From positions 930,001 to 994,000 of the forward strand of contig NEEC01000016.1 in NCBI GenBank assembly GCA_002189035.1: a DNA stretch of 64,000 nucleotides, given 5' to 3'. The notes beneath the pieces were generated by a model, which saw only the letters and a list, made by a program, of their open reading frames with translations, searched no databases and was not told the DNA's origin. A program made the translations under genes and the position numbers. Each line of letters starts with the position of its first letter. Within the stretch, counting starts at the first letter, position 1. The DNA comes from Utricularia gibba (taxonomy: Eukaryota > Plantae > Magnoliophyta). This document shows positions 1 to 49,305 of the stretch, piece by piece.

Positions 1-3000
1 TCCATGTTGGTTGTCTCGTCCAAGCTAGCTTGAAAATCGGACGCCTCTCTGAGAACCTCTTCACAGAAAGAAACCAGCTTTGCTTCTGCTACACAGTCAA
101 GTTTCTCTTTCACCGCTTGTTCTTCATTCACTGCTGCTGTTGTCTTCTGCAGGATGTCCAGGTAAATGCTAGTTCCAGACAACTCCTGCCGGAACAGATT
201 CGACGGGGACCTATTGTTGCAGAAAAAACGTTTCAGAGCTATACAACAAAAGTAGGAAGAACATGAGGAAACTCTGTTGCAAGTCGAGATAACAACCTTT
301 CAGTTGGAATTTGGTGCATCCGCAGTCTGAGGTTGGAGCATGAGTTGTAGGAGGCAGCGAACTCCAAGACAGAATACAGAATCTCCATCAAGCTAACCTT
401 TTGCTGTGCATTCAGCTTACTCCAATATTTGCTCTGGAATTTGGAAACGGTGAAGCTAAGCCGAAAGTCAAATCTCAAATGCACAAGATATGAAGATGTC
501 TCCGCAAAAACATTTGCAATACAGGAACCAAGCTTTAGTAGGAAGAACAATGGAAAGAAAGTTAAACTGGAAGTGTTTCTGTTCACCTGAATACAATCAA
601 CGACGCCCAAGAGTAAAAGCTGAGTGATGCATTTACTCCTCACAATGTCCAGGCCAAGGCCTTCCTTTGTACCTCTCGTATCCACATCAGGAACAGCAGT
701 CTAGCAAAATCACACAGAAAAAAAAAAAAAATCTTTCACCTTGACAATAGAAGTGCAGCGGAATATAAAGTTTGGCATGTAAAGAACGAAAGATTTACAT
801 GATCACCAGCTCTTGTAGGAGAAGATGGAGTTACTTCATCAAACTCAAGTGCTTTTCGCCTCGATGTGACGCCTCTCATTAACAGGTTCTCTTTCATATT
901 TTCCATAATTTTTTGTCCAAATGATTGACTGCTCTGAAGGCTTGCAGTTTTGGAAGGATTTCCAGCTGCTCCAGGTGATGATAGAATGCCTAGACAAGAA
1001 AGCCAATATTTGAAGTTTTAGAACAGTGACAAGATGTTAACTGGAAACTGTGCATTTTACAGGCTAGCAATATAGACGAAGCACTAACCGTTGGTTCTCT
1101 CGGCATCACCATGGCTCATAGTTTCTTGATTATGATCCGCTCCATGCAAATCAACGCTAGCAACTATGAGTGCTGGAGATGAGTCCCTTGGTAGATACTT
1201 GCCCTTCTCAAAACCCGGATCATTGAGCAGCTCAAGAGGTTGGGTGGTGTAAGAAACATCCCTGCTCAGAGATCAGATGATTTACTACTCAGGTTACAAC
1301 ACTTGAAATTATCTATAAAAAAAAAGCCTCTACCTTGTGCTTTTTAACAATGCATCCCAGTCCGGGTCACTGAACTGGTAACCTCCAACTTCGATGAGAT
1401 GCACCAGAGCACCAAAAGAGATTGAGATAACTAATTGGTCATTTTTCTTGGCACAGTCGAACAGCAAACTGAGGAGTTGTGGCAGCATATGACTCACGTC
1501 CTAATGTGAGGAATCCATTACATAGAATATTTTAATATGCATACTCGACATGTTAGGCACATTTGACATGAAAGACATAGCCAAAATATTTGTTCCCAAC
1601 GCAGTGATATTCAGTGCATCAAAGGAAAAAGAAGTTTTGTGGCATTACAAAGTGGAGCTCACAAACACATCAAAAGATTCAGTAAGCTTATTACCTTGTA
1701 AAAAGAATTGAACAGATTGCACAGCAACTGCAGGGCATGAGCACTGCTTTCACGGGTCAAATCACTACTAGAGGATACAAAATCCTGTCTTCCAGCTTTT
1801 ATTATGTTGCTAAAAATGGGAAACAGGACTTGCTGGAAAATTGTCTCCCAAAATAATTTTGAAAACTGGTTACCCCTCTGATCAAGCAAATCAAACAAAA
1901 CCTCAAGTGCACAGTCTCGAATCTCTGGTCTTCGATCAGAGGTTAGGTGAGACAGGCCATTAAGCATGGCATACCAATATTTCTCAGCATAAGCATGGTC
2001 TGAAGTATTGGACGTAAGACCCTTGAAACAAGGAAAAAAAAAAAGAAAGGAAATCTTATTTCCACAACATTGCAGTGCACAAATGATAGTCACTATCGAC
2101 GCCATGGGATCAATCATTGAATGCAAAAGGAATCCAAAACTTGATAGAACTTGTCAAAGGAGAAACTTGAGTGAATAATATAAAAATCTGAAAGAAAAAC
2201 AGCATAATGACTTGATTCTCGGACACGACCGTTTCCTGTTGCAAGCTTTTTATGTGCAGTGCTTTCTGATCGTAAAGCATGCATATCAGGTTAAAAAACT
2301 GAAGGACATATAGATCAGTGTTCACCATAAACAAACCTCAGCTAGCCGGTCCTCACATATGCGGAGGAGTGCAATAGCCTTCAAGCTTATGTTTTGAGAG
2401 CACTTGTTCTTAGCAAATCCAATCAGGCAATTCACACAATCCATAAAGAAATCCTTGAAAACCTGATTGAAGTGTTCCAGCATGACTGCATCATTACCAA
2501 AAGTTCAACAATGATCATATTTCATCTTTGCATAGAATATGCCATAACAAATCATTTAACTTGGATAGACCTTGTTCCAAATTCTCAAATGCTCTTTCAA
2601 CTATTTGTTCCATGTCATTATTTGCAGATGCAGTGAAAATCATAAAAACACTCTGCCATCCAGACTTCATTCTTCCACCTCTTGACTTAATGATCTGCTT
2701 AGTATGATAATAAACATTAATATAAAAAAGCATAAAATTACACAGCGGCTTGAGATTTCTCAAACAGACCTGAATGATGGAGTTCAATAAAAGCCTTCTG
2801 AGAGCATCAGATTTGCTTCTTTCCATGAGAACAGCAATTGGGTTCAAAATATCATTTTGGAAACTGAAGTTTGGAAGTTCCAAGCGATCCAAGTACTTAA
2901 TAATCAGTTGCCTAAGAGAATCTACAGCATACATAGCAACTCTTTCATCAGCATGCTCCCCTGCAAACACGAAATGCATGGATACGACAGACCATATTCT

Positions 3001-6000
3001 AGACCAGACCTGGTAATGAAACACATAAAACTGTGAGTAATGAGTCAACTGATAGGCCTAAAAAGTATCTAATTTATCTCCATAAATAGGAAATACAAGT
3101 ACAGATACGCAACATTTTTTAGTATATAGCGAAAAACTGAGGGGGTAGATGCATATGCAATACTTTTGACAAGAGGAAACAAATTGCATTAGATGTTAGC
3201 TTCAGTAACGAACAACACAGAGTATCAAAAGATCTATCAGTTCAAAAAATTACCAGATGTATACGACCCATATTATCATAACTAATTTCGACAATCTTTT
3301 GCAGGCTAAAAGTACGAGCAGGAGTCTGTTTCAATTCCTCAGCTGATACACAGCACAAAGCAGTGAAAAACTCCACTGCTTCCTCGCTAGGCAATTTTAT
3401 GCTATTTATGAATACTTGATCTGTTGGTTTTCCTGAGAGTTGCCTCAGGTTCTGGAGAATAACATCTCGCAGCAAATGATTTGATCCTTGCATGACAGTG
3501 GCCGTAATAGGTGGCCATGAAACGACATATTCAAGTCTGGAAATGCATTCCAGGATGGCCAACCAGGATTCATGAAGGGTATATATAGCAGTGTCACATA
3601 AATCAAGAAGTGCACGCAGTGCTTCCACGTTTTTATCACGCATTTCTTTTGGTGCATGAAGAAAGTTATACCTGCATTTAAACTCAACCATGAAGAAAAC
3701 CGCAAAAATGACATAGCAATCCTAGAAGAAATAACTGCAAAACAAAAAAGATTACGCATTTCTAAACATACTTTGCAGGGGTTAGCAGTGTAATGTCAAA
3801 AGAGAATGCATAGTGCAACCACTAGCAAACTATTGTTACCTCAAGAGAGATGTCATAAATGCATAACGCATGGTGTCTATCTCAAGAGAATGCGTTAAAT
3901 GTACACCTTCTTTGAACCCTTCCATACAAAGGTTAATCCTTGAATCATTGTCTGCCTCTCCCATTGTCACAGAAAATGTAGCAAGTAAAGGCCATCCAAC
4001 AGCTTCAACAATAGGATACATGAGTTCAATTCGCTGTGAAGTGTAGAAGACCCCCATTTGTGTACCTTGGCCCTTCATGAAATTCTGTATTTTCTTGATA
4101 ATTTCCTCAACATGAAACTTGGAGCCATTGAAATATTTAGTCTTCGGAAGGGAGAGATTAAGGTTCTTGAGGATTTGCATTAGTCCCCTTTTACTATCTT
4201 TGGAATTTCGAGCATGATCAACTGTTAAGTTTAGCTTCCGTTCCACTATGGCATCGTACATGTCCTCCAAGATTTCTGTAGGAGCAGATTCTTCGTTTCT
4301 TAAACTCAAGTGAACAAATTCACTTTTTGACAATTTTTGCGAATTTTCACAATCAGCGGCAAGCATTATGATTGCATAAGCAAGGACATATACAGCATCC
4401 GCGTTCATGAATAGACCAGGATTGCCCTTGTAGTAGCTGCAAAGGAGTGATAGACCAATACTCAGTGGTAATTGCATTAAATATGAATACTGAAAAACTT
4501 CAAAAAAGGTTAACAGAAAATATTCTCTGATAAATTTGCACTCAATATATATTACACACCATTCAGAGAACTTTTCTATGATGCGGTCAACCTTCTGAGC
4601 GTCCCAGGGAAGTTGAATACTTTCTAGGAATTCATAAATGGCAATATGTAACTTCATTCCAGAAAAGTTCATCGATTCAACATAAGCATGCAATGTGGCT
4701 GTGGCGAACTCTTCATTCTGACCCAAGTAATCCCCTATCATAGCCTGTTAAATAAATTAAAAATGTGCTTCAATTTTAAAACGTGTCAATGAAAACACAT
4801 CATTTTAACCTTGTCTAAGCCAGGAGTGTTTCGGAGAAACTGAGCAACAGAAGACAGATTGTTGTCCACCAACTGAGAAGACATCATGTATTGAATGCCC
4901 TTAACAGAATTCTGGTTGAACTGTTAAAATACAAGCCAGATTCAAGCAACCTAACAGATGCAAATTCTTTCATAAGACATAAAAAGTTAAATTTGGGGCA
5001 ACCTCAGAAATTGCAGTGCCAGTGATGGAGTCGTTATCACCAGACTTCATAAAATTGGATGGCAGATCCTTCCCACTGTTTGGATCATCATCCCTTTTTC
5101 CAGATGAAAACTCTTCAACAGATTCAACAGTACCCTGATTTCCTTGTCCCCTGTGAGATTTCTCCCAAATCCCCAACGATTTTAAAACATTCACAAGAGC
5201 CTACACGCACATTAGCAAGAAGCTGATTTTGCATTTGAGAAATGAGAAAAAATTTAAAATAGAGAAGATAACAGCGAAATGGGAGGTCAAGGCCTAAAAA
5301 CATGCCTGAAGAGATGATGTTTTAACTGATTTAGAGAGTGAGGCAGCAGAGGATTTTGAATCCATGTTTTGAGTTCCTTGGGAGATTCTGGACAGCGCAA
5401 TGACCTATAAAATAAAATCCTAATATGTGAAGCTACACGCAGGTAAAAAAGGAAGTATCCATTGCATGGGAATGCATACCATCTTTTCAAAGAGGTTTTG
5501 TGCTTCAGGATCACAGTCATAATTTATATAAAGTTCTACAAGTAATTGAGGATCCTTGCAAACTCTCTCCATCATCCTACAAGGTAGATTGAAGGATATG
5601 CATTATAATTATAAAATTAGCAAAGGAAGAGGAGTTGGAGAATGAAACTTTTCACATAACTCTAGAGCAAGCAAGCAATTTAGGATGGGAAGGTTGAAAA
5701 TATCCAAAATTTGGCATCCCAGGTCAGTTAACCTGAGTACTCTTTCAAATAAAGGCTACATACCTTAGAATGATGAGTTTTTTGTTTAGATCTGAACCAT
5801 CCAGAAATCTCAGGACTATCACAGAACAAAGAATTCCAATTTCATCCTAGAGGAGGAAGTATTAGGCTTAAGAGAAACAAGAGTAGGAAGGTAAATTCAC
5901 ATATTAGGTAGAAAATGCTGCTTGATTTCAGCTAGACCTTGAAACTTTCTCTCAATCGCAACAATATAACTGACAATATTCCTACAGCGGACTGCAAAAT

Positions 6001-9000
6001 GATGACAATTACTGTTAGAAGTGAAGGCATAACATAGATTTTTAAAATGGAAAAATGCACCTGAAACAAGATAGAAGACTCGGATACTGAGGCCCGCATC
6101 AGTACAAGTGATAAGTGACCTCTGACTGAGTCAAGAAACTGAAAAATCTTTTGTGAAGAAACTCCTTCCAATGAGCTCTACAATCCAAATCAAGCACAAT
6201 ATTTAGCCAACTAAAACAGCACGTTTTTGTGAATAAAATTAGTATGGAAAATAAGCTAGGAAACCTGAAGAAGCTCCAAGACAAGTACACGAGTTTTTGT
6301 AGTTGCATCATCATTACCCTCCTTCATACCCATCTTCGCATAGAACCACAAGTTTATGAGTCACAAGTAGCCAGCAGTAGGGTGAATTAACAAATGTGAA
6401 GAAGATGCTAGAAGAAAAACCTCACAAAGGGTTTGGAGAACAAGTAAAGCATCACTTAGTTTGGCATTCATCGAGTGTGGATCCATTGCACTGAAAGAAT
6501 TAATGTGTTGGAGACAGTGAGCAAATAAACTATTTAAGAATTATAGTTTGCCCCTATAGTTACGAATCTAATTTTTCTGTACCTTGTGGCCATTCTTCTA
6601 CCTTCAGGACTCAGAGCCTGTTTAAATATGGCTTCTACGCCCTACACAAAAAGGATTCTCAAAAAATTTTTAACATATTTGGTAGGAAAGATTATTCAAA
6701 ATCCATAGGAGGTGAATACATCAAGGGTCAAAGAAACTGAAACAAAACACAGGCATAGTATTCTATTTATAAACTACAGTACACCTTAATATCATTGGCA
6801 CCAACAAGACTTTGTATTCCTTCAAAAGATGAAAGATATGTCATATTTTTCTGTTGCACATATATTAAATTCTCAGAAGCTGTCATTGTATCAGTTGAAT
6901 CCATTTCTTTGGCCTCAAGAGAATCTGCAGGTACCTGAAATTACAAGGGAGAAAAAGTGGCCTCTGGCATTCAACATCTGTACACTTGAGTAATAAAATA
7001 ATTTGGAAGCACACATGCATACCCCATCGGTTTCCAAATGTCTCAAAACAATAGAGAGCATTTGTGTTAGCATAGCCTTTGAAGTTGCCTGGTTGATAGG
7101 ATTCTTGCTGAAAATCGTAATCACAGTAAGAAGGGATAAACTTTCATCAATCTGACAGTGAATTATCATTGCAAAAACCTGTTAAGAGCAACATCAAAGC
7201 ACACCCTGATAACTCCCAGCAACGGATCACCATGCACTGCATGAAAAAGGTTGTTATTGCTGACTAACCGACAGAAACCACTGTGGGAATGAAAATACAA
7301 AAGAAGTTGTATTATTATGTGCAGGCAGGACGTACATCTCGTAGTGGTCAAATAAAACTTCATCAAGTAGAATTACAAAGCAACAAAACATTGAAAGGAA
7401 GGCAAATTGTCATGGGCATGGATCAGATTCTTCTTTTGATATCAGACACCAGGTGTCTGACATTAAAGTATAATAGGAAGTTTTAATCACCTAGCAGTCC
7501 AACATGCATCAAATTTCAGGGATATAACACTCATCAACGAAAAAGCAATCAGATAGTTTTAAAACCTATAAAAAAAAGAAACAAAGAGAAAAAAAGGGAG
7601 ACGAACAGACATGGCCTGTGATGGGAGCTTAGGGTCCATATATAGCACTTACCTCGCATTTTTGATGATGCTATGGCAGTAAATAGCACTTTCAGCACTT
7701 GAAGGGTAGTGCTGCATTACGCTTGTGTCACAGAAAATGAGAAATGTTAACAGGGACATGTGACCATGAATGCATACCTATCAGGTGTTGAGCTGCCCAC
7801 AAGACTGCAGACCATGTTGAGAATGTCCGCCAGCAATTTTGAATTTGTACCAGTATTAAGACCAGGATCACCGTCTAAATGATTGTACTCTATAAGCTTC
7901 TGAATAAAATAGCAAAAGTGACAAAATATGAGCCCTTTAAGGACAGAAGTAATATTAAGGCGCTTTAAGTATGAAAAAGAATGCCAATTTACAAGAGGTC
8001 ATCATAAAGTAAGAAACAAGATACAACGCATTACAGAACAGAATTGAAAAAATATATATATTGAAAGATTCCAAATAGGGAAGGAAAAGGAAACCATGTG
8101 AAGGGACATTGAAAAAATAAATCACGCAAGGGTATTTAAGATTTTTATACAATATCAATAGGAGAAATCAACTGCTTACGTGGAGACAATCCAGTGCAAG
8201 CTCCACAAATTTTATGTTCTTTGTTTCGAAGGCAACCCTTAGTGGATTCAGGACAATCTCAACCAGTGATCCTCCTAAGGTGTAGCCTGCGTTTGCCAAT
8301 ACTTTGTTAATGGGCTCAATTTTGTTAGCAATTCCAGAGGCAGGATCTTCCTCAGGGAGGATGGTGCTCCATTCAGATGATTATCCCCATTTTTTCCTTT
8401 TTCAGCACTAGATTCAGGTTTCTCGGAACCACTAGAAAAGGATGTTGCAAAAGAACAATTTAGCAAGGATAACCAGATAGGGCTATTTTCATACGAGGAT
8501 ACCTATCCATCAAACATTAGGAAGGTGTAGGCATGGCTAAAGATTCCTTCTTTTTCCGAGGAACTCAAGAACTAAAATAATAATAATACAAGGGAAGTCT
8601 ACTCACAATGTATTGTAAACAATAGAAGGGGATTCTAGACATATGTGTTGTAAAGGCTCGTAAAAAGAAGTTAGAAGTGCCTAAGCATTAGGGTCAAAAT
8701 CAATTGGGTGAAGTTCTTCGTATCATTGCTGTGTGGGAATCACTGTAACACACTTAAAAGAAGAGCATATTGCAAACCCGTCATTCTTGCAGCATATCAT
8801 GGCTTTGCAATCAATGGGAAATAAATACAAGTTTCGATGCATATAAATCCTCTGCCTATCACACGATAATATATGAGATCAGATGTATGAGGTCTTCCTA
8901 TTGGCCAATGCAGCATTGCATGAATGATATAAAAGGATTTTGATGCACCGAGTTAACTTACTCTTTCACATCATAGCTGACGGGGTGATCAGCGTCCTTG

Positions 9001-9290
9001 CAATAGTCTGGAATCAAAAGACATCAAATAACAGCAAATTACCTCTAGGCATTCCAAATCGTCAATCACACGCCAGCGTAAATGAAACATATCAATAAAG
9101 TGGTATGCAGATCATGAAGACAATTCAAGCATTCTCAAAAGGAACACGAAAAAATGACAAATTTCACCGGCAGCGTACCAAAGTATGTCTGAATAGCAGA
9201 CTGAAGATCACTGTATTTCTTGTTTCCACATTCCTTGAGCATGGACTCAAATGCCCGCGCCAGAAAACCGCCCGCTGCCACCCCCGCCAT
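1..9290 (-). CDS. BIG5: Brefeldin A-inhibited ARF guanine nucleotide-exchange protein 5-like (BIG5/MIN7 type; DCB-HUS-Sec7-HDS). Multi-exon, divergent Sec7, 3' end beyond the left edge
   Basis: ATG at 9290 gives [36 protein letters not shown] (BIG5 N-terminus). Further spliced exons match BIG5: [156 protein letters not shown] at the edge. Confidence 0.93.
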
Positions 9291-26439: not shown

Positions 26440-27153
26440 ATGGGGAGAAAGGGGGTGCAGCTATTAGTGATGTTGAGTCTGCTGGGTATGGTGCTTGTGG
26501 GGTGTGTCAGTGGAAGAGAGCTGGAAGAGACTGAAGAATTACAAAAGCCAGATGAAGGCAAAAAATCATTGCTTTCGCAGTCAGATTGTGGTGGAAAACG
26601 TGGTGGCAGCCATGGAATTTCAAATGGAGGCCATGGGAAGACTGGAAAGCATCACAGTCATCATAGTGGAGCTGGAGCTGATCCAGGAACTCGTGGTGGC
26701 AGAGGCATAGGAGTTGATCCTGGAATCGGTGGTGGCAGAGGCACAGGAGTTGATCCAGGAATCGGTGGTGGCAGAGGCATAGGAGTTGATCCAGGAATCG
26801 GTGGTGGCAGAGGCATAGGAGTCGATCCGGGAATCGGTGCTGGCAGAGGCATAGGAGTTGATCCCGGAATCGGTGGTGGTGAAGGAGGGCTAGGTGGTGT
26901 TTTAGGTGGCATTGGCGGTGTTCCGGGACTTGGTGGGAGTCATGGAGGATTAGGTGGTGGCGGCGGCGGTGGCGGTGGCGGTGGCGGTGGCATTGGTGTT
27001 GGTTTAGGTGTAGGATTTGGTCTCGGAGGAGGCGGAGGTGGAGGAGCTGGAGGAGGAGGCGGCTTCGGTGGCGGAGGAGGAGGTGGTTTCGGTGGCGGAG
27101 GAGGAATCGGAGGTGGATTCGGAGGCGGAGCAGCAGGAGGCATTGGCGGCTGA
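26440..27153 (+). CDS. Secreted glycine-rich cell-wall-type protein (237 aa, intronless CDS)
   Basis: Hydrophobic signal peptide then GRELEE; 12-aa GRGIGVDPGIGG repeats; poly-Gly/GGGFG C-terminal half. Confidence 0.88.
   Translation: MGRKGVQLLVMLSLLGMVLVGCVSGRELEETEELQKPDEGKKSLLSQSDCGGKRGGSHGISNGGHGKTGKHHSHHSGAGADPGTRGGRGIGVDPGIGGGRGTGVDPGIGGGRGIGVDPGIGGGRGIGVDPGIGAGRGIGVDPGIGGGEGGLGGVLGGIGGVPGLGGSHGGLGGGGGGGGGGGGGIGVGLGVGFGLGGGGGGGAGGGGGFGGGGGGGFGGGGGIGGGFGGGAAGGIGG
26695..26874 (+). repeat. Five tandem 36-nt coding repeats (GGRGIGVDPGIG)
   Basis: Unit GGTGGCAGAGGCATAGGAGTTGATCC[T/A/G/C]GGAATCGGT starts at 26695, 26731, 26767, 26803 and 26839. Confidence 0.95.
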
Positions 27154-28777: not shown

Positions 28778-31700
28778 ATGGTGGTTTCAGGTAATGACCC
28801 GTTAGAATCGATTTTGAACTCAATACGGGTGGTTAAGGACGCTGTGTCGCCCATAGAATCCAATCTCAGAAGGCTCACGAAGAATTTCGAGCATTGCTTT
28901 AGTGGGGCTTCTAAGAATGGGGAGTTTAATGCTGGTTTTGATGATAGTCTTAAACAGGCGGCGCCTGGATCGTTGGGAATTAAGAGGAAGGGTAGTCAAA
29001 ATGTGGTCAGCTGCAGCGAGAAAAGAAAATATAAAGTTCCAGGTACTTTTTTTGTTGGAATCTTTACAGACAAAGGTAGATGTAATGTCAAAAGAAAGGG
29101 ACGAGCTATTGCTGATGGAGTAGTCGAATTTGGCATGGATTCGTCAAAGAAGAGAATTGATGAAAGCACTGGACATGGGGAAAATGATGGGAACTTCCAT
29201 GGGAATTGCTTGAACATCCAAACGGCATTTTCATTTTTGATGAACGGTTTTGTGGAGGCCCTCCCTAAATCTTTCAAGTCTGAGAAAAGACAGTTTCCTA
29301 AGGTTAGTAAAGGAATTGATTCTGACTGCAGCGATTCATATTTAAAACATGATGTAAGATGTGGAGAGGATGATCCTAATCAGTTGAATGCTAAAGAACT
29401 TAAACCTATTCCGTTTGACATTCTCATTAGCTGTGTATTTGATCATTTGAGTCATGTGGTAAAATTTGATGAAGGCATTCATGGGACTGATTGCAAGAAT
29501 CATGGGTGCAGTAAGCCAATAGCAGCATCCAGTCACCGGTTTGACCGAGTGAGAGCACTTTTAAGTATTTTAGAAGGTAAAAGACAAGATGTAAATGGAT
29601 TCCTGGGAAATCTAAACTTCGCCCGTGTAGGATGTGTGCCATCAAATGTCAGTGCTCCATCTTTGGCAAAAGACACCTTGAATGAAGAAATAAGCAATGC
29701 TGATAACAGTGAAGGCAGTAGCAGTCCTCGAAAAAACTTGGTTAATGGATTGCTGAGTATTCCACTTACAAATGTTGAACGTCTGAGGTCAACTCTTTCA
29801 ACGGTATCCTTTACTGAGTTAATTGAACTTCTGCCATTGATGGGAGGGAGACCTTCAAAAACAGATCATCCTGATAAAAGGGAGCTGTTCTCCGTCCAAG
29901 ATTTCTTCAGATACACTGAAACAGAAGGTATCTTTTTCATTTACATTCAGTAACTGTGCTAAGGCTTTATATGTTTGGCTGTGAGCACCAGATGAACGCG
30001 TGGTTATTGCTGCTTAGATTAGGTACAGTTTTGATGCACACAGTGGTCTTGATGAGCAGGGATGATTCCATGGGCGAATGATTTGGATCTTTCCTTCAGA
30101 TAAACATTTTCTGTATATTGTAATTTTCCTTGGAAGTTCCAGGCATTCATATTGCATTTCTGTATGCAGGTATGAGGTTTTTTCAAGAGTTGGACAGGGA
30201 TGGTGATGGACAAGTTACTCTTGAAGATTTGGAAATTGCTATGAGAAAAAGAAAGCTCCCCAAAAGATATGCTAACAAGTTTATGAGCCGAACTCGGAGT
30301 CACTTGTTCTCCAAGTCTTTTGGTTGGAAGCAGTTCTTGTCCATGATGGAACAGAAAGAACCCACCATTCTCCGTGCTTATACCAGCCTTTGTCTGAGCA
30401 AGTCTGGCACGCTTCAGAAAAGTGAAATCTTGGCTTCTCTTCAGAATGCTGGGCTTCCAGCAAATGAAGATAATGCGTTAGCCATGATGCGCTTTTTAAA
30501 TGCTGATTCAGGGGAGTCCATATCCTACGGCCATTTTAGAAATTTTATGCTTTTGCTTCCCTCAGAACGCCTTGAAGAAGATCCAAGGTACACCATTTTT
30601 TTTTTTTCATTTCTGCGCCTTCACAAGGCACAGCATCTCTATATTTGGATTGCTCAGAGTTTGCACTCACGAAAATAGTACAGTCACCAATGTCCTTCAT
30701 CCCTGTGATTATGTTTCCTTAATGTCACTTGTTACAAACACTCGTTTTTCATCAGCATTCTCCTTTACTGTTCTTTCAGAAGCATCTGGTTTGAAGCTGC
30801 TACTGTGGTTGCTGTTCCTCCCCAGTTGAAATACCTGCCGGTAGTGTTCTTAAATCAGCACTGGCTGGAGGACTCTCTTGTGCCCTTTCCACAGCCTTGA
30901 TGTTTCCCATGGACACCGTCAAGGTGATTCTTGTTTTTGAAATGTGTCATCTTTGTGACAATGGCGACTCTGGGATTGAATGCTTTGAACTCCTTTCTTT
31001 CTTCCCCTTCCCTTCTCCTCAGACGCGTGTTCAAGCTTCTACACTTGGATTCTCGGCAATCATATCTAAGCTTCCGCAAATTGGCATCCGTGGATTGTAC
31101 AGAGGATCGATTCCAGCGATACTTGGCCAATTTTCAAGGTGATTTCTTGACTCCAATGTGCATAATCCTCAGTTCTTTGAAGGATCACCTCATCTGAATG
31201 AATCTATAATGCAGCCATGGTCTCAGAACTGGAATTTTTGAAGCGAGCAAGCTCGTCATGATAAATATTGCGCCGACACTTCCAGATTTGCAGGTTAGAA
31301 CACAACTGCCCTGTAGCTTAGCTTGTGAGCTGTTCATGTTGGCTGCCTGCTTGAGCTTGACGACAGCGGAAATGCTGCATTTTTACTGTGGTGTGTTCAG
31401 GTTCAGTCTGTAGCATCATTCTGCAGCACAGTCCTCGGAACAGGCGTACGCATTCCCTGCGAGGTGTTGAAACAGAGGCTTCAGGCTGGTTTGTTTGACA
31501 ATGTCGGCGAGGCTGTGGTCGGCACATGGCAGCAAGACGGCCTCCGAGGCTTCTTCCGTGGGACCGGAGCCACCCTCTTCCGCGAAGTTCCGTTCTACGT
31601 CGCCGGAATGGGCCTTTACGCCGAATCCAAGAAGGTGAGAAGCTTCCCTTGTTCGCATTCCATCGACTTCATCCTCTTTCAACTCGACTCCTTCTGTGGC

Positions 31701-32028
31701 GCAGGCCGTCCAGAAGATCCTGGGGAGGGAGCTGGAGCCTTGGGAGACCATCGCAGTCGGGGCGCTCTCAGGTGGCCTGGCGGCCGTGTTAACCACCCCG
31801 TTCGACGTAATGAAGACGAGGATGATGACTTCTCGGGGCCGTCATATCACTCTATCGACGGTGACGTTCTCCATTCTCCGGCGGGAGGGGCCTCTGGGGC
31901 TCTTCAAAGGCGCCGCGCCTCGATTCTTCTGGATCGCGCCGGTGGGGGCGATGAACTTCGCCGGATATGAGCTCGCGCGAAAGGCCATAGACAATGAAGA
32001 ACACGGAGAGACATCGGTTCAAAAATGA
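28778..32028 (+). CDS. EF-hand-containing mitochondrial substrate carrier (At2g35800/SAMTL-like); apparent -1 frameshift at 30820-30823
   Basis: MVVSGNDPLESILNSI N-terminus; EF-hand DRDGDGQVTLED; carrier signatures PMDTVKTRVQ, PCEVLKQRLQ, PFDVMKTRMM. Exons 28778-29927, 30170-30587, 30780-30923 and four more. Confidence 0.92.
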
Positions 32029-32881
32029 CCCCCCAGCAGCAAGACGACGGCGCAGGAAACGGTTTTGTCAAGTTTCCGGCATCTGCCTAATCATTTCTTC
32101 CGATTCAAACAAAGTGTCTGAACAGTAATCAACCAATCAAAATTATTTGTGAAAAAAACCACAAAATATAGTATATTCAAAACTTTTATAGTGGGAATTA
32201 CAGTTATAATAATAGTAATAATGATAATAAAATGCCTCTTTATGAGATTTTTTTGAAATATTAATTAATTCTTGAAATACAATCTTAAATTAAACAGTAA
32301 AAAATATAGTAAAAAAATTACACAAACAGTAATCCATAAATATAATCAACAAAACACAAAACCCTTCTTTGTTTTATCTAATACTAATTGCTTTATAGCC
32401 AAAATATTTTTTGAATACCGCTAACTAAATATTATCTAAAAAACTAATTCATCTAAATTATTCTTATTTAAATCCAAATAAATTAAATTTCTTTTATCCT
32501 ACCCTCCCCACCAAACACTCCCCAATGCCACTTTGCCGATTCCCCGAACAAAGTAATTATATCTGATAATTAGAAGATATTATAAAATTTTATTTTGTTC
32601 TCAAAATTGAGAGGCAGATGTGACGATAGAAGCATAAGTTAAAGATGATTTCTTCATGAAACCCTAATAATGCTAAGCACCTAAAATATTAATTAATAAT
32701 TCCCAACATGTGTGTCTTGAGACAGACATCTGGTAATTAGGTTTTTTGTAATAGAAAGTTTACAGGAAAGATGGAGAGCAGCCCACACGTGCATTTTATT
32801 TTATTCTTACAAACCGCAAGCCTACACACAGGAACATTCTTCACAGCACAAACCCTTCGTCACTTTGTGATCCATTTCAGC

Positions 32882-33383
32882 TCATGGCTCCTGCCCGTTG
32901 GGAACGTCCTGCCATCCGCCTCTGCGCCACCCGCCGCCTCCGCCATACCCGCGGCCATATCCGCCATACCCGCCACCGCCACCATACCCGCCGCCATACC
33001 CGCCGCCATATCCACCGCCATATTGATCGGTAACCGCCTGGCTCTCATCCTGCCACCCGCCCCACCTTCCGCGGTGCCCGCCATAGCCATGGCCTCCGCC
33101 ATATCCTCGGTGACCGTACCCGCCGCCATACCCACCACCCCATTGATCGGTCTGGACATCGGACTCCTTAACTGCCTTCTCCTTGGCTGGGTCATGCAGC
33201 AAAACAGATGATCAACAACAAGAAAAAGGAAAAAGACCAGGTCGAGAAGAATTCACGAATGGTTTACTTACTAGCTTGAGCAGGATGGGGGTCCTCGGCG
33301 AGCTCCCTAGCCACAGCATGAGACGAGGAGAGGAGAAGAGAAGCCAGCAAGAGACCAGCTAAGAGAAAGAACTTGGAAGCCAT
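32882..33383 (-). CDS. Secreted glycine-rich protein (GRP family, signal peptide + ARELAE), copy 1, 2 exons
   Basis: Exon 1 33383-33272 MASKFFLLAGLLLASLLLSSSHAVARELAEDPHPAQA; GT-AG intron; exon 2 33186-32882 TKEKAVKESDVQTDQWGGGYG...GGWQDVPNGQEP*. Confidence 0.92.
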
Positions 33384-35201: not shown

Positions 35202-36509
35202 AGAATATTTTAATGTTGAATCGAATTACTTGGAAATGACCAGGTTCCGACAATTGAAGAAGGTCTTTTGATCATATCTTCGAGTTGGTCGGTCTTTGCC
35301 ACAAATTCTTCTAATCATTTTTGTATACTATCATTACACTCTTTTTTCTCTGTCGGTACTCAAGTTTTTTTTATCAATATTTTTTTAAAAATAAAAATAT
35401 AGCTATAATTACAAAAACATTTTTTTAAAAAAATCATCTTATACAATTTTTAACTTTTTGTTACCCACTCATACTAAATTAACTTTTTAAAAACATTAAT
35501 TATTTGTACTCAGTATTCATTGATAACTAGTTGATGTTAATTAGTTTTAATGAATTTTAATATAATAAATTTATTTAAAATCTGTTTTACTATAAATCAA
35601 AAATTATCTTTAGATAAATTTCAGGATTTTTTGTTTTATTTATATTTGTGTGTTACATTTTTTATTTAAATAAAATTAATTATCTAATCAAAACTAAAAA
35701 TCAACCACTAATAGATAGTAGAAATATTTTTCAATAATTTTTAATAAATACTATAGTGTTCTTCAAAATAAGTAATTTTCGGTACAATATAACACTAAAT
35801 ATTTTATTAAATCTATACTAGAAAATAAAAGAGATTTATAATTAAAACAACGTTTTGAAACATTTTTAAAGTATATTTTTACCTTTTCAAAAATACTTAG
35901 TAAAAAAATTATGATAAATATAATAATCATTTTGAAACTTAAGAAAAACCAAACAAAAAAGATATAAGACGATCAGAAAAATTATGAAAATCCATAAATA
36001 TAATAAAAAAACACTAAACCCATTCTTTATTTTATCTAATACTAATCGTTCATAGCTAAAATACAATTTTAATACCGCTAACTATATCTAAATTATTCTT
36101 ATTTAAATCCAAATAAATTAAATTTCTTTTATCCTACCCTCCCCACCAAACACAATGCCACTTTGCCGATTCCCGAACAAAATAATTATATCTGATAATT
36201 AGAAAATATTATAATATTTTATTTTGTTCTCAAAATTGAGAGGCAGATGTGACGATAGAAGCACAAGTTAAAGATGATTTCATCACGAAACCCTAATAAT
36301 GCTAAGCACCTAAAATATTAATTAATAATTCCCAACATGTGTGTCTTGAGACAGACATCTGGTAATTAGGTTTTTGTAATAGAAAGTTTACGGGAAAGAT
36401 GGAGAGCAGCCCACACGTGCATTTTATTTTATTCTTACAAACCGCAAGCCTACACACAGGAACATTCTTCGCAGCACAAACCCTTCGTCACTTTGTGATC
36501 CATTTCAGC

Positions 36510-37053
36510 TCATGGCTCCTGCCCGTTGGGAACGTCCTGCCATCCGCCTCTGCGCCACCCGCCGCCTCCGCCATACCCGCGGCCATATCCGCCATACCCG
36601 CGGCCATATCCGCCATACCCGCGGCCATATCCACCATACCCGCCACCGCCACCATACCCGCCGCCATACCCACCGCCATATCCACCGCCATATTGATCGG
36701 TAACCGCCTGGCTCTCATCCTGCCACCCGCCCCACCTTCCGCGGTGCCCGCCATAGCCATGGCCTCCGCCATATCCTCGGTGACCGTACCCGCCGCCATA
36801 CCCACCACCCCATTGATCGGTCTGGACATCGGACTCCTTAACTGCCTCCTCCTTGGCTGGGTCATGCAGCAAAACAGATGATCAACAACAAGAAAAAGGA
36901 AAAAGACCAGGTCGAGAAGAATTCACGAAAGGTTTACTTACTAGCTTGAGCAGGATGGGGGTCCTCGGCGAGCTCCCTAGCCACAGCATGAGACGAGGAG
37001 AGGAGAAGAGAAGCCAGCAAGAGACCAGCTAAGAGAAAGAACTTGGAAGCCAT
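36510..37053 (-). CDS. Secreted glycine-rich protein, copy 2 (two extra YGGYGRG repeats), 2 exons
   Basis: Exon 1 37053-36942, exon 2 36856-36510; nearly identical to copy 1 except for a 42-nt repeat expansion. Confidence 0.92.
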
Positions 37054-46366: not shown

Positions 46367-49305
46367 CTAGTCACTGACCTTTTCGTGCGTGAAGGCTGTG
46401 GGAGGAGAGGAACTGTAGCTAGCTTGCTCTAGAAAATGATTCATGCTCTCTTGAGCAAATTCTCTCAGATTGTTGAGCTCGGGAAGAACTGTCTTCCCAA
46501 GATCAGGCCTATCTTTTCTCCTTAACTCTGCACATTGGAGTCCTAGTTTGGCCATGGCGAGTGCTTCCTCCAAGGGCCAGTCATGGACATAAGAATCCAG
46601 TACTTCAGAGATTGCGCCCTTGTCCACTGCTCGACTGACGATGTGGGACAACCCCATCGCGGGTTTTCCTGTCAGGATTTGTAGTAGCACAATACCAAAT
46701 GAATACACATCGGATTTCACACCAAGCATCCCTGTTTGTTGATACTCAGGGTCTATGTAGCAAAACGTTCCTGCTGTTGAAGTTAGCCGTAGCTGTGTCA
46801 CATCATCAGCTATGGAGGGAGGAACAAGCCTGGCCAAACCAACATCACTGATTTTGCTGACGTAATTTTGGTCCAGAAGAATGTTTCCGGGTTTTAGATC
46901 ACGGTGGACTAAAGGCTCTGGCTTTGTTTGATGCAGGAACTGCAATCCGGTTGCAATCTCTGCAGCGATTCGAAACCGCACTTGCCAAGAGAGTGGCCGG
47001 GTGTTCCCTTTCCTGAAGAGACGATCTTCAAGGCTCCCATTTGCCATGTACTCATAGACAAGACAACCATATTCTGGGCATGCTCCAAGAAGGAGAACCA
47101 GGTTCGGGTGTCTCAAACAACTCAAAACCTCAACCTGTTAGAGATTTGTTTTTGTAGCCAATTGAGAAACATCTATCATTGCAATGAATGCATGACATAA
47201 CTGTATATATACCCAAAGCTTACTTCTTGATTGAATTGTGCTTTCCCTTGAGCAGCATCAGGACGCAAAACTTTTATTGCAACAGGGGTATGATCGAGGT
47301 GACTCTTATATACAGGACCATAGCCACCACCTCCAATTTTCAGGGATTCAGAGAAGTATTTTGTTGCCTCTTCGATTTCTTCAATGCTATACCGCCTGTA
47401 TCTCAATTTCAAAACATGCTCTGTTTCACTTGACTCTGAATGAGTTTTCATTTCAATGGCTAAACGTCTCCGGGCTTCGATTTCAGCAACTCTTCTTGCT
47501 GCTTCAGCGTCCTCCAATGCTGCTTTATACTTTGCTCTCTCTTGCTCAGCACTCAGTCTGGCTGCTTCCTCTGCGAATCGAGCAGCTTCCAGCCTTTTTT
47601 CTTCTTCCGTTCTCCAGCGATTAAGTTCAACAGCCTATGCTTTCAGAGAAAGTGTTATCTGCTAGAGAGATGAAATTCTGAACTACATGGACTTTGTGAT
47701 TCCACTCACCTTTTGTTTTGCAGTCAATGCCTCCCTGCAAGCTGTGCTGTACATTTCCATAGTTTTCTGCAACTCAGCTTTCAATCTTCTCATTTCAGTT
47801 TCTGCATCATCCTTCATTTATTCCAAAACAATACCAGGCGTTAGCAAATCATAGTAAAGTCTTACTATCTGTGTTCACAAGACAAGGCATTTACACTTTC
47901 AAGCGATGATGTCGAAAAATCAGTTATGAAACTTTGTTCACTCCCTTTAGTCCCCGATCCATAGCTACTTGCGGAGCTAGTTGAAATTCTTGAGTTTCTC
48001 CATGAATCAGGCGCATCAAACAGAACACCCGAGACTGGATCAATAGGCATATCTGTGCTTGGTCTACTGGAGCTCACAAATGATATATCACTCTCTGTTT
48101 CCATCGAATCAGCAAGCATGGTCGGATCATAACCTCTTTCCTTGGTTAAAGGTGATCTGTTTGAAGAATTATTCACATCTCCATCAACATCCCTCTCATG
48201 GCATTCAACAAGAAAAGCAATTTTAGCAGGAAAACTTACCTGAATAAATCAAAATCCTCCATAACATTAGTCTTCCGGTGTGTCCTGTCTGTTGTAGTTC
48301 AAATGAGATTACTTATCACATGAGCAATCCAGGAGGTTCTATTGCAAGCTAAGGGATTATTCTACTACATCTCAGGAAAAGGTGCAATGCTAGAACAGCA
48401 TAAGAAGGATTCAAACAAACCTCTGGCATGGGACATGTGCCGGGGGAATGGACCAGGGGAGCTAGGCACACTGGTACCATTACGCTTCTGCAGTTGCTGT
48501 ATTTGAGGAAGGAGGGGAGATGTAAATGGGGCCATTCGAGATGCATTTCGAACCGATGATATCTTTGACTTAGAGATCGTATAAACTGTGCAGAAATCAG
48601 GGGAGGCTTTTGAAACACTACTAGGGATATCCATGGCTTTCAGTCTTCTGCAATATCAGAAACAAGGAATTGTGTTAAACTCTTGTAGCAATTGCTGCAG
48701 CTACATCAATGAATCATTCGAAGAAAAGGGGTGTTTACTTGAGAAAGCCACGGTGGGATGCACCCAAGACCAAGTTCTCAATTGCAGCATGAGCAACATA
48801 CTCTACAATCATCTTTGGAATATCTGGGTCCTCTAGAACAACATCAAAGCATTGTATCTGTGAAACAATCATCAAAACTGTGAATTCAAAAATGAATCAT
48901 CAACATACCCATTCCCTGAAAAACAAATCATTCAAAAAGCACCCACATCTTTTCGAGTGCAGAAGCAATGAAAGGTGAGGAACAGCTCTCGGACATGACT
49001 TTCAAGCAATTGAAGGTCAGCTGATCCAGAACCGATCAATCCATTTGAATTATATTTGTCTACAGATGAAAGCGAGAAGAATGAGCAACAACCCATCCCA
49101 GAAAAAAAGACAAAATCTGGAATTTACGCGAGGAGTTCGCAATGCAGTGAATGAGAATCACGGTTTGGCCTTTGGAAAGGAGATTATCGACAGTCCATTT
49201 GATCGCATGTTGGCTTCCTTTATCTTTGTCGATTGCCACAGCAACCAAAGCATTTCGACCTCCAGCTTTTCCACCATTCCCACTTTTGGGGCTCGAACTC
49301 CACAT
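46367..49305 (-). CDS. USP-domain (adenine nucleotide alpha hydrolase-like) receptor-like cytoplasmic kinase, PUB/RLCK-IXb-related; no C-terminal U-box seen
   Basis: VAVAIDKDKGSQHAIKWTVDNLL USP N-terminus; coiled-coil; kinase motifs KIGGGGYGPVYK, VAIK, HRDLKPGNILLD, SDVGLARL, GTFCYIDPEY. The last codons may be spliced at 46378 to a short RNST* exon ending at ~46303. Confidence 0.92.

Follow-up and report, generated by a model that had tools for sequence, protein, structure and literature searches.

A BIG5/MIN7-type exchange factor gene in Utricularia gibba

The stretch of DNA analyzed here comprises 64,000 nucleotides of the Utricularia gibba genome (contig NEEC01000016.1, positions 930,001 to 994,000) and is referred to in its entirety as the window. 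At its start, on the minus strand, lies a gene for a BIG5/MIN7-type large ADP-ribosylation factor (ARF) guanine-nucleotide exchange factor (ARF-GEF), in which the catalytic glutamate of the Sec7 domain, known as the glutamic finger, is replaced by an aspartate. Soybean BIG5 (P0002) and Paulownia BIG5 (P0303) are colinear with this gene in tblastn, from Met1 to residues ~1715 and ~1690, respectively, and the final ~65 residues fall past the window start, outside the 64 kb. The parts of the gene referred to below are as follows; X4, X6 and X10 denote contigs from independent sequencing runs, which are described further on.

3-9290, minus strand: BIG5/MIN7-type large ARF-GEF gene, start codon at 9290-9288 (colinear tblastn; spliced contigs X6 and X10)
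5480-5576, minus strand: HUS exon with the HUS box intact, 81% identical to Genlisea
5201-5305, minus strand: GC-AG intron, the sole one among the 15 RNA-supported introns examined (RNA joints)
4810-4920, minus strand: exon with the N-terminal portion of the Sec7 domain (RNA joints, GT-AG introns, frame kept)
4560-4744, minus strand: exon with Sec7 motif 1 (Pfam Sec7, 2.4e-18; alignment to ARNO motif 1; 0 differences in X4, X6 and X10)
4437-4559, minus strand: GT-AG intron of 123 nucleotides, stop-free and in frame, between the motif 1 and motif 2 exons
3840-4436, minus strand: exon that carries Sec7 motif 2 and continues through the post-Sec7 region as far as the beginning of HDS1 (Pfam Sec7, 3.6e-12; RNA joints)
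1668-3671, minus strand: HDS1-HDS3 exons at 3254-3671, 2770-3009, 2571-2694, 2337-2492 and 1668-1985 (Pfam Sec7-like_HDS, 2.6e-19; tblastn)

Pfam matches on the exons and the colinear tblastn alignments give the domain order DCB-HUS-Sec7-HDS1-3 followed by the BIG C-terminal region, with the Sec7 domain spread over four exons. The introns measure 65-245 nucleotides, and with boundary ambiguity resolved the 15 listed joints correspond to 14 GT-AG introns and one GC-AG intron. Every RNA-supported exon from 6641 to 2571 (15 exons) is read in a single frame with 0 stops. Taken together, the spliced contigs, the open frame and the colinear homology indicate that the locus is an intact, transcribed and correctly spliced gene. 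As the intron at 4437-4559 is stop-free and in frame, a 301-amino-acid open reading frame (ORF; 3836-4741) runs straight through it, and its retention would add 41 residues to the Sec7 domain. Exon translations were aligned as separate fragments and merged into one aligned row for identity counts and trees.

Loss of the glutamic finger and decay of the catalytic groove

The Sec7 glutamate inserts beside the beta-phosphate and the Mg2+ site of ARF bound to guanosine diphosphate (GDP), and thereby expels the nucleotide. In the window gene, the site that carries this residue is altered as follows.

4601-4603, minus strand: GAC (Asp) at the glutamic-finger position, equivalent to ARNO Glu156; canonical Lamiales and Genlisea have GAA
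4604-4606, minus strand: TGG (Trp) for the invariant Gly preceding the finger; GGG in canonical genes, CCA (Pro) in Genlisea; no indel here in three contigs
4337-4378, minus strand: degenerate motif 2 (canonical YAVIMLNTDAHNPM), then a 3-residue deletion common to Genlisea (alignment)

A phmmer comparison with PDB chains aligned the window's LPWDAQK to LPGEAQK of ARNO, which places the aspartate at Glu156 and thus at the glutamic finger. The original prediction, which had reported an Asp codon GAC at 4603-4601 in motif 1, was correct in both letters and coordinates. Motif 1 reads IQLPWD where canonical proteins have FRLPGE, and so lacks the invariant finger; motif 2 reads IMLAADCEN in place of IMLNTDxHN and is likewise no longer intact. 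The short deletion that the original prediction had noted with motif 2 is real, spans three residues and is common to Genlisea. Before and at the finger, the codons are CCA GGG GAA in canonical Lamiales, CCC CCA GAA in Genlisea and CCC TGG GAC in the window.

These positions otherwise hardly vary. Among 257 fetched homologues with a recognizable motif 1, the finger pair is Gly-Glu in 255, Pro-Glu in one (Genlisea) and Arg-Glu in one, with Asp in none, and across 113 full-length angiosperm BIG5 proteins a 26-residue stretch and the motif 2 columns reach at least 98% invariance. The window protein has further changes: Gln stands for the Arg of FRLPGE, the Asn, Thr and His of motif 2 are gone, and the loop that follows is three residues shorter. 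Conserved are the AQK-DR-EKF and NPG-F-NAD residues, the IML core, and the Asp and last Asn of motif 2. The catalytic residue has been lost within a catalytic domain that remains recognizable by Pfam, by the alignment to ARNO and by the alignment to BIG5 proteins.

Independent reads and expression

We compared window positions 2500-8000 (5,501 letters) with four sequencing runs. A DNA contig from another sample (run X4) spans 3520-4737 with 0 differences from the window, and two spliced contigs, of 5,313 nucleotides (run X6, study P3) and 3,502 nucleotides (run X10, study P4), span 4560-4743 and show neither differences nor indels there. An RNA origin is presumed for runs X6 and X10; both contigs skip every intron, and they come from two separate studies. 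The X10 contig differs from the window elsewhere, at 2629, 2645, 4195, 4856 and 7857, so it represents another genotype that still carries Trp-Asp. Codons 4601-4609 read the same in all three contigs as in the window, and not as GAG or GAA. Since the same letters occur in one DNA contig and two spliced contigs, they are neither an assembly error nor the property of a silent locus.

The original prediction had allowed that the Trp might be a paired homopolymer error (true CCT GGG GAC). With no indel and 0 differences, the three contigs rule out that the Trp-Asp codons stem from a homopolymer slip or other sequencing error, and the spliced contigs of two studies rule out a silent locus. A sequencing or assembly artefact at codons 4601-4609 has scarcely any probability left, given that the letters recur in DNA from another sample and in spliced contigs from separate studies, one of them of a different genotype.

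The X10 differences merit a separate description. Four were translated, of which three are non-synonymous (Phe>Cys at 2645, Ser>Gly at 4195 and Leu>Pro at 4856) and one, at 2629, is synonymous; the difference at 7857, outside these four, is also exonic. On the mRNA strand, three of the five are A>G. Either contig error or polymorphism between strains under weak constraint may account for them.

Family membership and closest relatives

An exhaustive phmmer search with the ORF at 3836-4741 returned 2,168 matches, the best only 61% identical. This best match (P0001) is a partial, 846-amino-acid hypothetical protein from Genlisea aurea (EPS63520.1; M569_11264). Canonical BIG5 proteins are 52-56% identical to the window ORF, and the other representatives listed no more than 43%. 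Within the length ranges 165-527 and 465-1480 amino acids, the protein database contained neither the window product nor any relative closer than 61%, and the only protein there named Genlisea aurea was this divergent fragment. In phylogenetic analysis the window gene falls in the BIG5/MIN7 clade, nested in core Lamiales BIG5 with support 100. On these alignments and trees, we assign the gene to the BIG5/MIN7/BEN1 lineage of large ARF-GEFs.

The window gene has the same domain order as Arabidopsis BIG5/BEN1/MIN7 (AT3G43300) and its angiosperm orthologues, is colinear with them over ~1,700 residues, shares their exon structure and keeps their HUS box. It departs from them in the finger Asp, the Trp for the preceding Gly, a motif 2 of AADCEN for NTDAHN and the loop that is three residues shorter. 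The Genlisea protein reads REFLEAFQLPPEAQKIDHIMEKFSE...AIMLGANCDSSR---RMS in the same region. It shares with the window the FLE-x-x-QLP motif, EKFS, a decayed motif 2, the identical 3-residue deletion and the same rate regime; the changes common to both are Lys to Glu in FLK, Arg to Gln in FRLP, Ala to Ser in EKFA, and loss of the motif 2 Asn-Thr/Ala/His. Genlisea nevertheless keeps the finger Glu (LPPEAQK), preceded by Pro instead of the window's Trp, whereas its motif 2 also lacks the Asp and last Asn that the window retains.

Other Sec7-related proteins offer partial parallels. ARNO/cytohesin-2 E156D and E156K and GNOM emb30-1 (E658K) alter the same residue, E156D being the exact substitution found in the window. 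Those mutants each carry one engineered or induced change, the Sec7 domain being intact otherwise, while the window change is natural, the same in both sampled genotypes, and set within a broadly remodelled groove. The Sec7 domain of FBX8 (FBXO8) and Mon2 are precedents for proteins of the Sec7 world that function with no measurable exchange activity; Mon2, a large relative in the Sec7 family, has no Sec7 domain, and Pfam names the shared DCB, HUS and HDS families after it. FBX8 and Mon2 are old, separate subfamilies, unlike the window gene, which is a member of the catalytic BIG subfamily in transition, with its Sec7 fold present.

Rate of change and order of decay

The original prediction had described the flanking DCB, HUS and HDS exons as in frame and well conserved. 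The frame is indeed kept, but the conservation is not: identity to soybean BIG5 is 62-64% for the HUS, HDS1 and HDS2 regions, whereas Forsythia reaches 83-89%. Canonical angiosperm BIG5 proteins are, over the Sec7 and post-Sec7 regions, 78-96% identical to a Forsythia query (119 other matches listed). By domain, identity to soybean BIG5 is as follows.

HUS: window 62%, Forsythia 87%
Sec7: window 57%, Forsythia 85%
HDS1: window 64%, Forsythia 83%
HDS2: window 64%, Forsythia 89%

A site was counted as invariant at 98% invariance or more among 102 full-length BIG5 proteins, and those changed in the window distribute as follows.

HUS: 22 of 70 (31%)
Sec7: 38 of 97 (39%)
HDS1: 13 of 81 (16%)
HDS2: 21 of 92 (23%)
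part of HDS3: 11 of 65 (17%)

The excess in Sec7 over HDS1-3 (38 of 97 versus 45 of 238) is significant by Fisher's test (p = 1.6e-4). The whole window protein evolves several-fold faster than canonical BIG5, with HUS and Sec7 most affected. A decay confined to Sec7 between well-kept flanks is ruled out by this acceleration in all domains.

The distribution of changes between the window and Genlisea gives an order to the decay. At 22 Sec7 invariant sites the window and Genlisea are both altered, 14 of them to the same residue, and ~13-14 more have changed in each lineage alone, so erosion began in the common ancestor and went on in both descendants. Because Genlisea has the decayed motif 2 and the deletion while keeping the Glu, this erosion predates the split of the two lineages and the change from Glu to Asp came later. 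As judged from these comparisons, the loss was not a single event, the active-site groove having already decayed in the ancestor common with Genlisea.

A fast BIG5 copy in an unrelated lineage bears comparison. This 1765-amino-acid protein (P0171), derived from a Logan transcript and grouped with Saponaria, reads FSLPSEAQKIDC and IMLNIDIHN, with the Gly before the finger and motif 2 altered and the Glu kept. Its sequence suggests the same order of decay, groove first and Glu last.

Selection on the retained gene

Codon alignments were made exon by exon, from tblastn of exon translations against the BIG5 loci of Genlisea (contig L001), Forsythia (L002) and Sesamum alatum (L003). The ratio of non-synonymous to synonymous substitution rates (omega, or dN/dS) was estimated pairwise by the Nei-Gojobori method, with bootstrap confidence intervals (CI).

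Sec7 omega: window versus Genlisea 0.28 (CI 0.18-0.44; dS 0.73); Forsythia versus Sesamum 0.09 (CI 0.05-0.17; dS 0.72)
HDS omega: window versus Genlisea 0.19 (CI 0.14-0.26); Forsythia versus Sesamum 0.10 (CI 0.07-0.15)
Motif 1 to motif 2 core (63 codons), omega: window versus Genlisea 0.27; Forsythia versus Sesamum 0.05
Motif 1 to motif 2 core, dN: window versus Genlisea 0.26; Forsythia versus Sesamum 0.024

Constraint on the catalytic core is several-fold weaker than normal, yet far from neutral. The comparison of Sec7 with non-Sec7 regions, which the original prediction had proposed, finds purifying selection in both, and the gene that is under this selection is also the one seen spliced in two studies. 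A Sec7 omega so far from neutrality argues that something about the domain is being kept. A dead pseudogene is ruled out, with no stop or frameshift in any RNA-supported exon and omega well below 1.

Orthologue or duplicate, and the prospect of gene loss

In maximum-likelihood trees the window and Genlisea genes are sisters (support 100) within core Lamiales (support 100). Their branches are long, with a stem of 0.31 and tips of 0.41 and 0.43 where the median tip is 0.055, and the window branch is roughly 7-8 times longer than those of other Lamiales. The pair groups with fast second copies from Sesamum calycinum (L004), Buddleja (06G) and Penstemon (006685), with values of 83-88 in the Shimodaira-Hasegawa-like approximate likelihood-ratio test (SH-aLRT), while a separate clade, with support 99, contains the canonical copies (Buddleja, Sesamum, Erythranthe, Paulownia and others). 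This second-copy grouping runs a real risk of long-branch attraction between relaxed copies, and a topology with the window and Genlisea placed in the canonical clade is not rejected by an approximately unbiased test (p 0.40). Derived residues common to the Sesamum calycinum copy and the window clade amount to 27%, against 10-24% for other divergent copies, and are thus not distinctive. A tblastx comparison with the Forsythia and Sesamum BIG5 flanks for synteny matched only the remaining BIG5 gene itself. The window gene may be a paralog or an orthologue of the canonical copies; the tree topology leans only weakly towards the fast second copies.

The Sesamum calycinum second copy (L004, 21690-22200; JACGWM010000016.1) is annotated as two genes, of 883 and 771 amino acids. 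Its homologue of the window exon at 3840-4436 is frameshifted (GGKRGFLYFTED*, with continuation in another frame), and the copy is either a pseudogene or an assembly error. The 3-residue deletion once considered for this copy was rejected, as its real sequence has a full-length loop and the frameshift lies further on. Fast evolution is likewise seen in the second BIG5 copies of Buddleja, Penstemon, Ipomoea batatas and Saponaria.

Such observations raise the question of whether the window gene is simply heading for loss. BIG5 could have become dispensable through redundancy with BIG1-4, an intact duplicate or a reduced body plan, leaving an expressed but functionless relic. The acceleration of every domain would fit this explanation, as would the fast second copies of other Lamiales, frameshifted in Sesamum calycinum L004, and the three non-synonymous changes among the four coding differences translated in X10. 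Set against it are a frame kept open across more than 1,700 codons and ~30 introns by two lineages at dS ~0.73, omega values of 0.19-0.28 with CIs far below 1, and correct splicing in runs of two studies. On balance we consider an impending loss decidedly unlikely.

Exchange activity and the proposed retained function

The glutamic finger has been described as invariant and essential (PMC6724607, PMC13714605). For ARNO E156D, PMC3314957 reports a 99.74% reduction in activity, citing Beraud-Dufour 1998, with ~0.26% left. GNOM E658K is catalytically inactive, yet it retains the ability to assemble and shows trans-complementation of a membrane-binding allele (emb30/B4049). By analogy with ARNO E156D, and because the Trp, the Gln, the motif 2 losses and the shorter loop come in addition, exchange activity of the window Sec7 domain is likely to be very low or absent.

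It is conceivable that the protein is still a working ARF-GEF, with an Asp finger in a remodelled groove, perhaps with a co-evolved ARF or ARL partner or altered brefeldin sensitivity, and that its fast evolution reflects a lineage-wide elevation of rate combined with adaptive retuning. The active-site region is still constrained (motif 1 to motif 2 omega 0.27), the acidic charge persists along with AQK-DR-EKF, NPG-F-NAD, the IML core and the motif 2 Asp and last Asn, and Genlisea retains its Glu. This explanation must nevertheless contend with the near-complete loss of activity reported for ARNO E156D, the Trp for the neighboring Gly, the Gln for the FRLPGE Arg in both species, the missing motif 2 Asn, Thr and His, the loop shortened by three residues, and the occurrence of Asp in 0 other fetched Sec7 proteins. 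We therefore judge a functional exchange factor unlikely, although less so than a gene on its way to being lost.

The original prediction had proposed a catalytically dead paralog kept as a scaffold, a modulator or an effector decoy. Its crippled site and its retention are borne out (Sec7 omega 0.28, spliced transcripts), whereas the decoy has no evidence behind it. Arabidopsis MIN7 is a target of the effector HopM1, and a dead MIN7 copy could in principle bait HopM1-like pathogen effectors; this general fact and the impaired look of the window copy are all that speak for the idea. Nothing within the window points to a link with an immune receptor or an effector, with no fusion and no nearby nucleotide-binding leucine-rich repeat (NLR) receptor gene seen, and omega is below 1 in every segment, with no sign of positive selection. 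A decoy is very improbable.

Our preferred interpretation is that the window encodes a retained, expressed and selected BIG5-lineage protein with severely impaired exchange, which persists for a job other than exchange. Sequence comparison and the analogy with characterized mutants make this probable, though with less assurance than the loss of activity itself. Since the gene is transcribed, spliced and under purifying selection along its whole length, it is most likely kept for a job that needs the folded protein and not fast exchange. Several points weigh on the other side. An Asp retains the negative charge, and the remodelled Trp loop could in principle reposition it. The acceleration is protein-wide and may mean that the gene is generally dispensable, not that it has taken on a non-catalytic role. 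Of the four X10 coding differences that were translated, three are non-synonymous, hinting at weak present-day constraint, and the pairwise omega values of 0.28 and 0.19 are crude Nei-Gojobori estimates at fairly high dS (~0.7-1.0).

The impaired-exchange interpretation would imply the following sequence of events. Before the split from Genlisea, the BIG5 gene would have come under lastingly weaker constraint, with the HUS-Sec7 module most affected. The ARF-binding and catalytic groove, made up of motif 1, motif 2 and the loop after it, would have lost residues that are invariant in other angiosperms, and in the window lineage the catalytic-loop Gly-Glu would then have become Trp-Asp, leaving a Sec7 domain with little or no ARF exchange activity. 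A retained role might be exerted through the DCB and HUS domains, a still-folded Sec7 and the HDS domains. It may consist of scaffolding or recruitment on the trans-Golgi network (TGN)/early endosome, of dimerization with other large ARF-GEFs through DCB-HUS, or of slow or regulatory ARF binding, possibly of ARF-GDP, with the HDS domains perhaps contacting the membrane or partners.

Other genes in the window

Beyond the BIG5 gene, the window holds several further coding regions.

26440-27153: a 237-amino-acid ORF whose glycine-rich product looks secreted and repeats GIGVDPGIGGGRG units
28778-32028: an EF-hand gene (Pfam EF-hand_6, 4.4e-07), the EF-hand followed by mitochondrial-carrier-like sequence, probably a calcium-regulated carrier
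32771-33211 and 36399-36881: near-identical glycine/tyrosine-rich protein genes, ~3.6 kb apart, with long ORFs on both strands
46367-47517, minus strand: a protein kinase domain (Pfam PK_Tyr_Ser-Thr, 9.3e-32) with a coiled-coil-like exon before it

Implications for BIG5/MIN7 and the Sec7 family

Accounts of Sec7 exchange factors treat the glutamic finger as invariant and indispensable in all of them. Full-text literature searching found no description of a natural Sec7 domain without the Glu, nor of Lentibulariaceae ARF-GEFs, and for Utricularia together with ARF-GEFs it found only a general review on plant cell polarity. We put forward, tentatively and as a possibility against which the odds still stand, that plants of the bladderwort family keep a selected and expressed BIG-type ARF-GEF whose exchange site has been dismantled over tens of millions of years. 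If true, BIG5/MIN7 would have an important GEF-independent function, as a scaffold, a dimer partner or an ARF-GDP binder at the TGN/early endosome, and the window gene would be the first natural pseudo-GEF in the large ARF-GEF family, whether as the sole remaining BIG5 or as the partner of an intact copy.

A natural, expressed and retained BIG member with an Asp finger is a ready-made separation-of-function allele, with which exchange-dependent roles of BIG5/MIN7 could be told apart from scaffold-only ones in the endocytic trafficking of PIN and BRI1 and in immunity. The dated order of decay, with the groove going first in the ancestor common with Genlisea and the catalytic residue later, would moreover offer a rare view of an enzyme becoming a pseudoenzyme.

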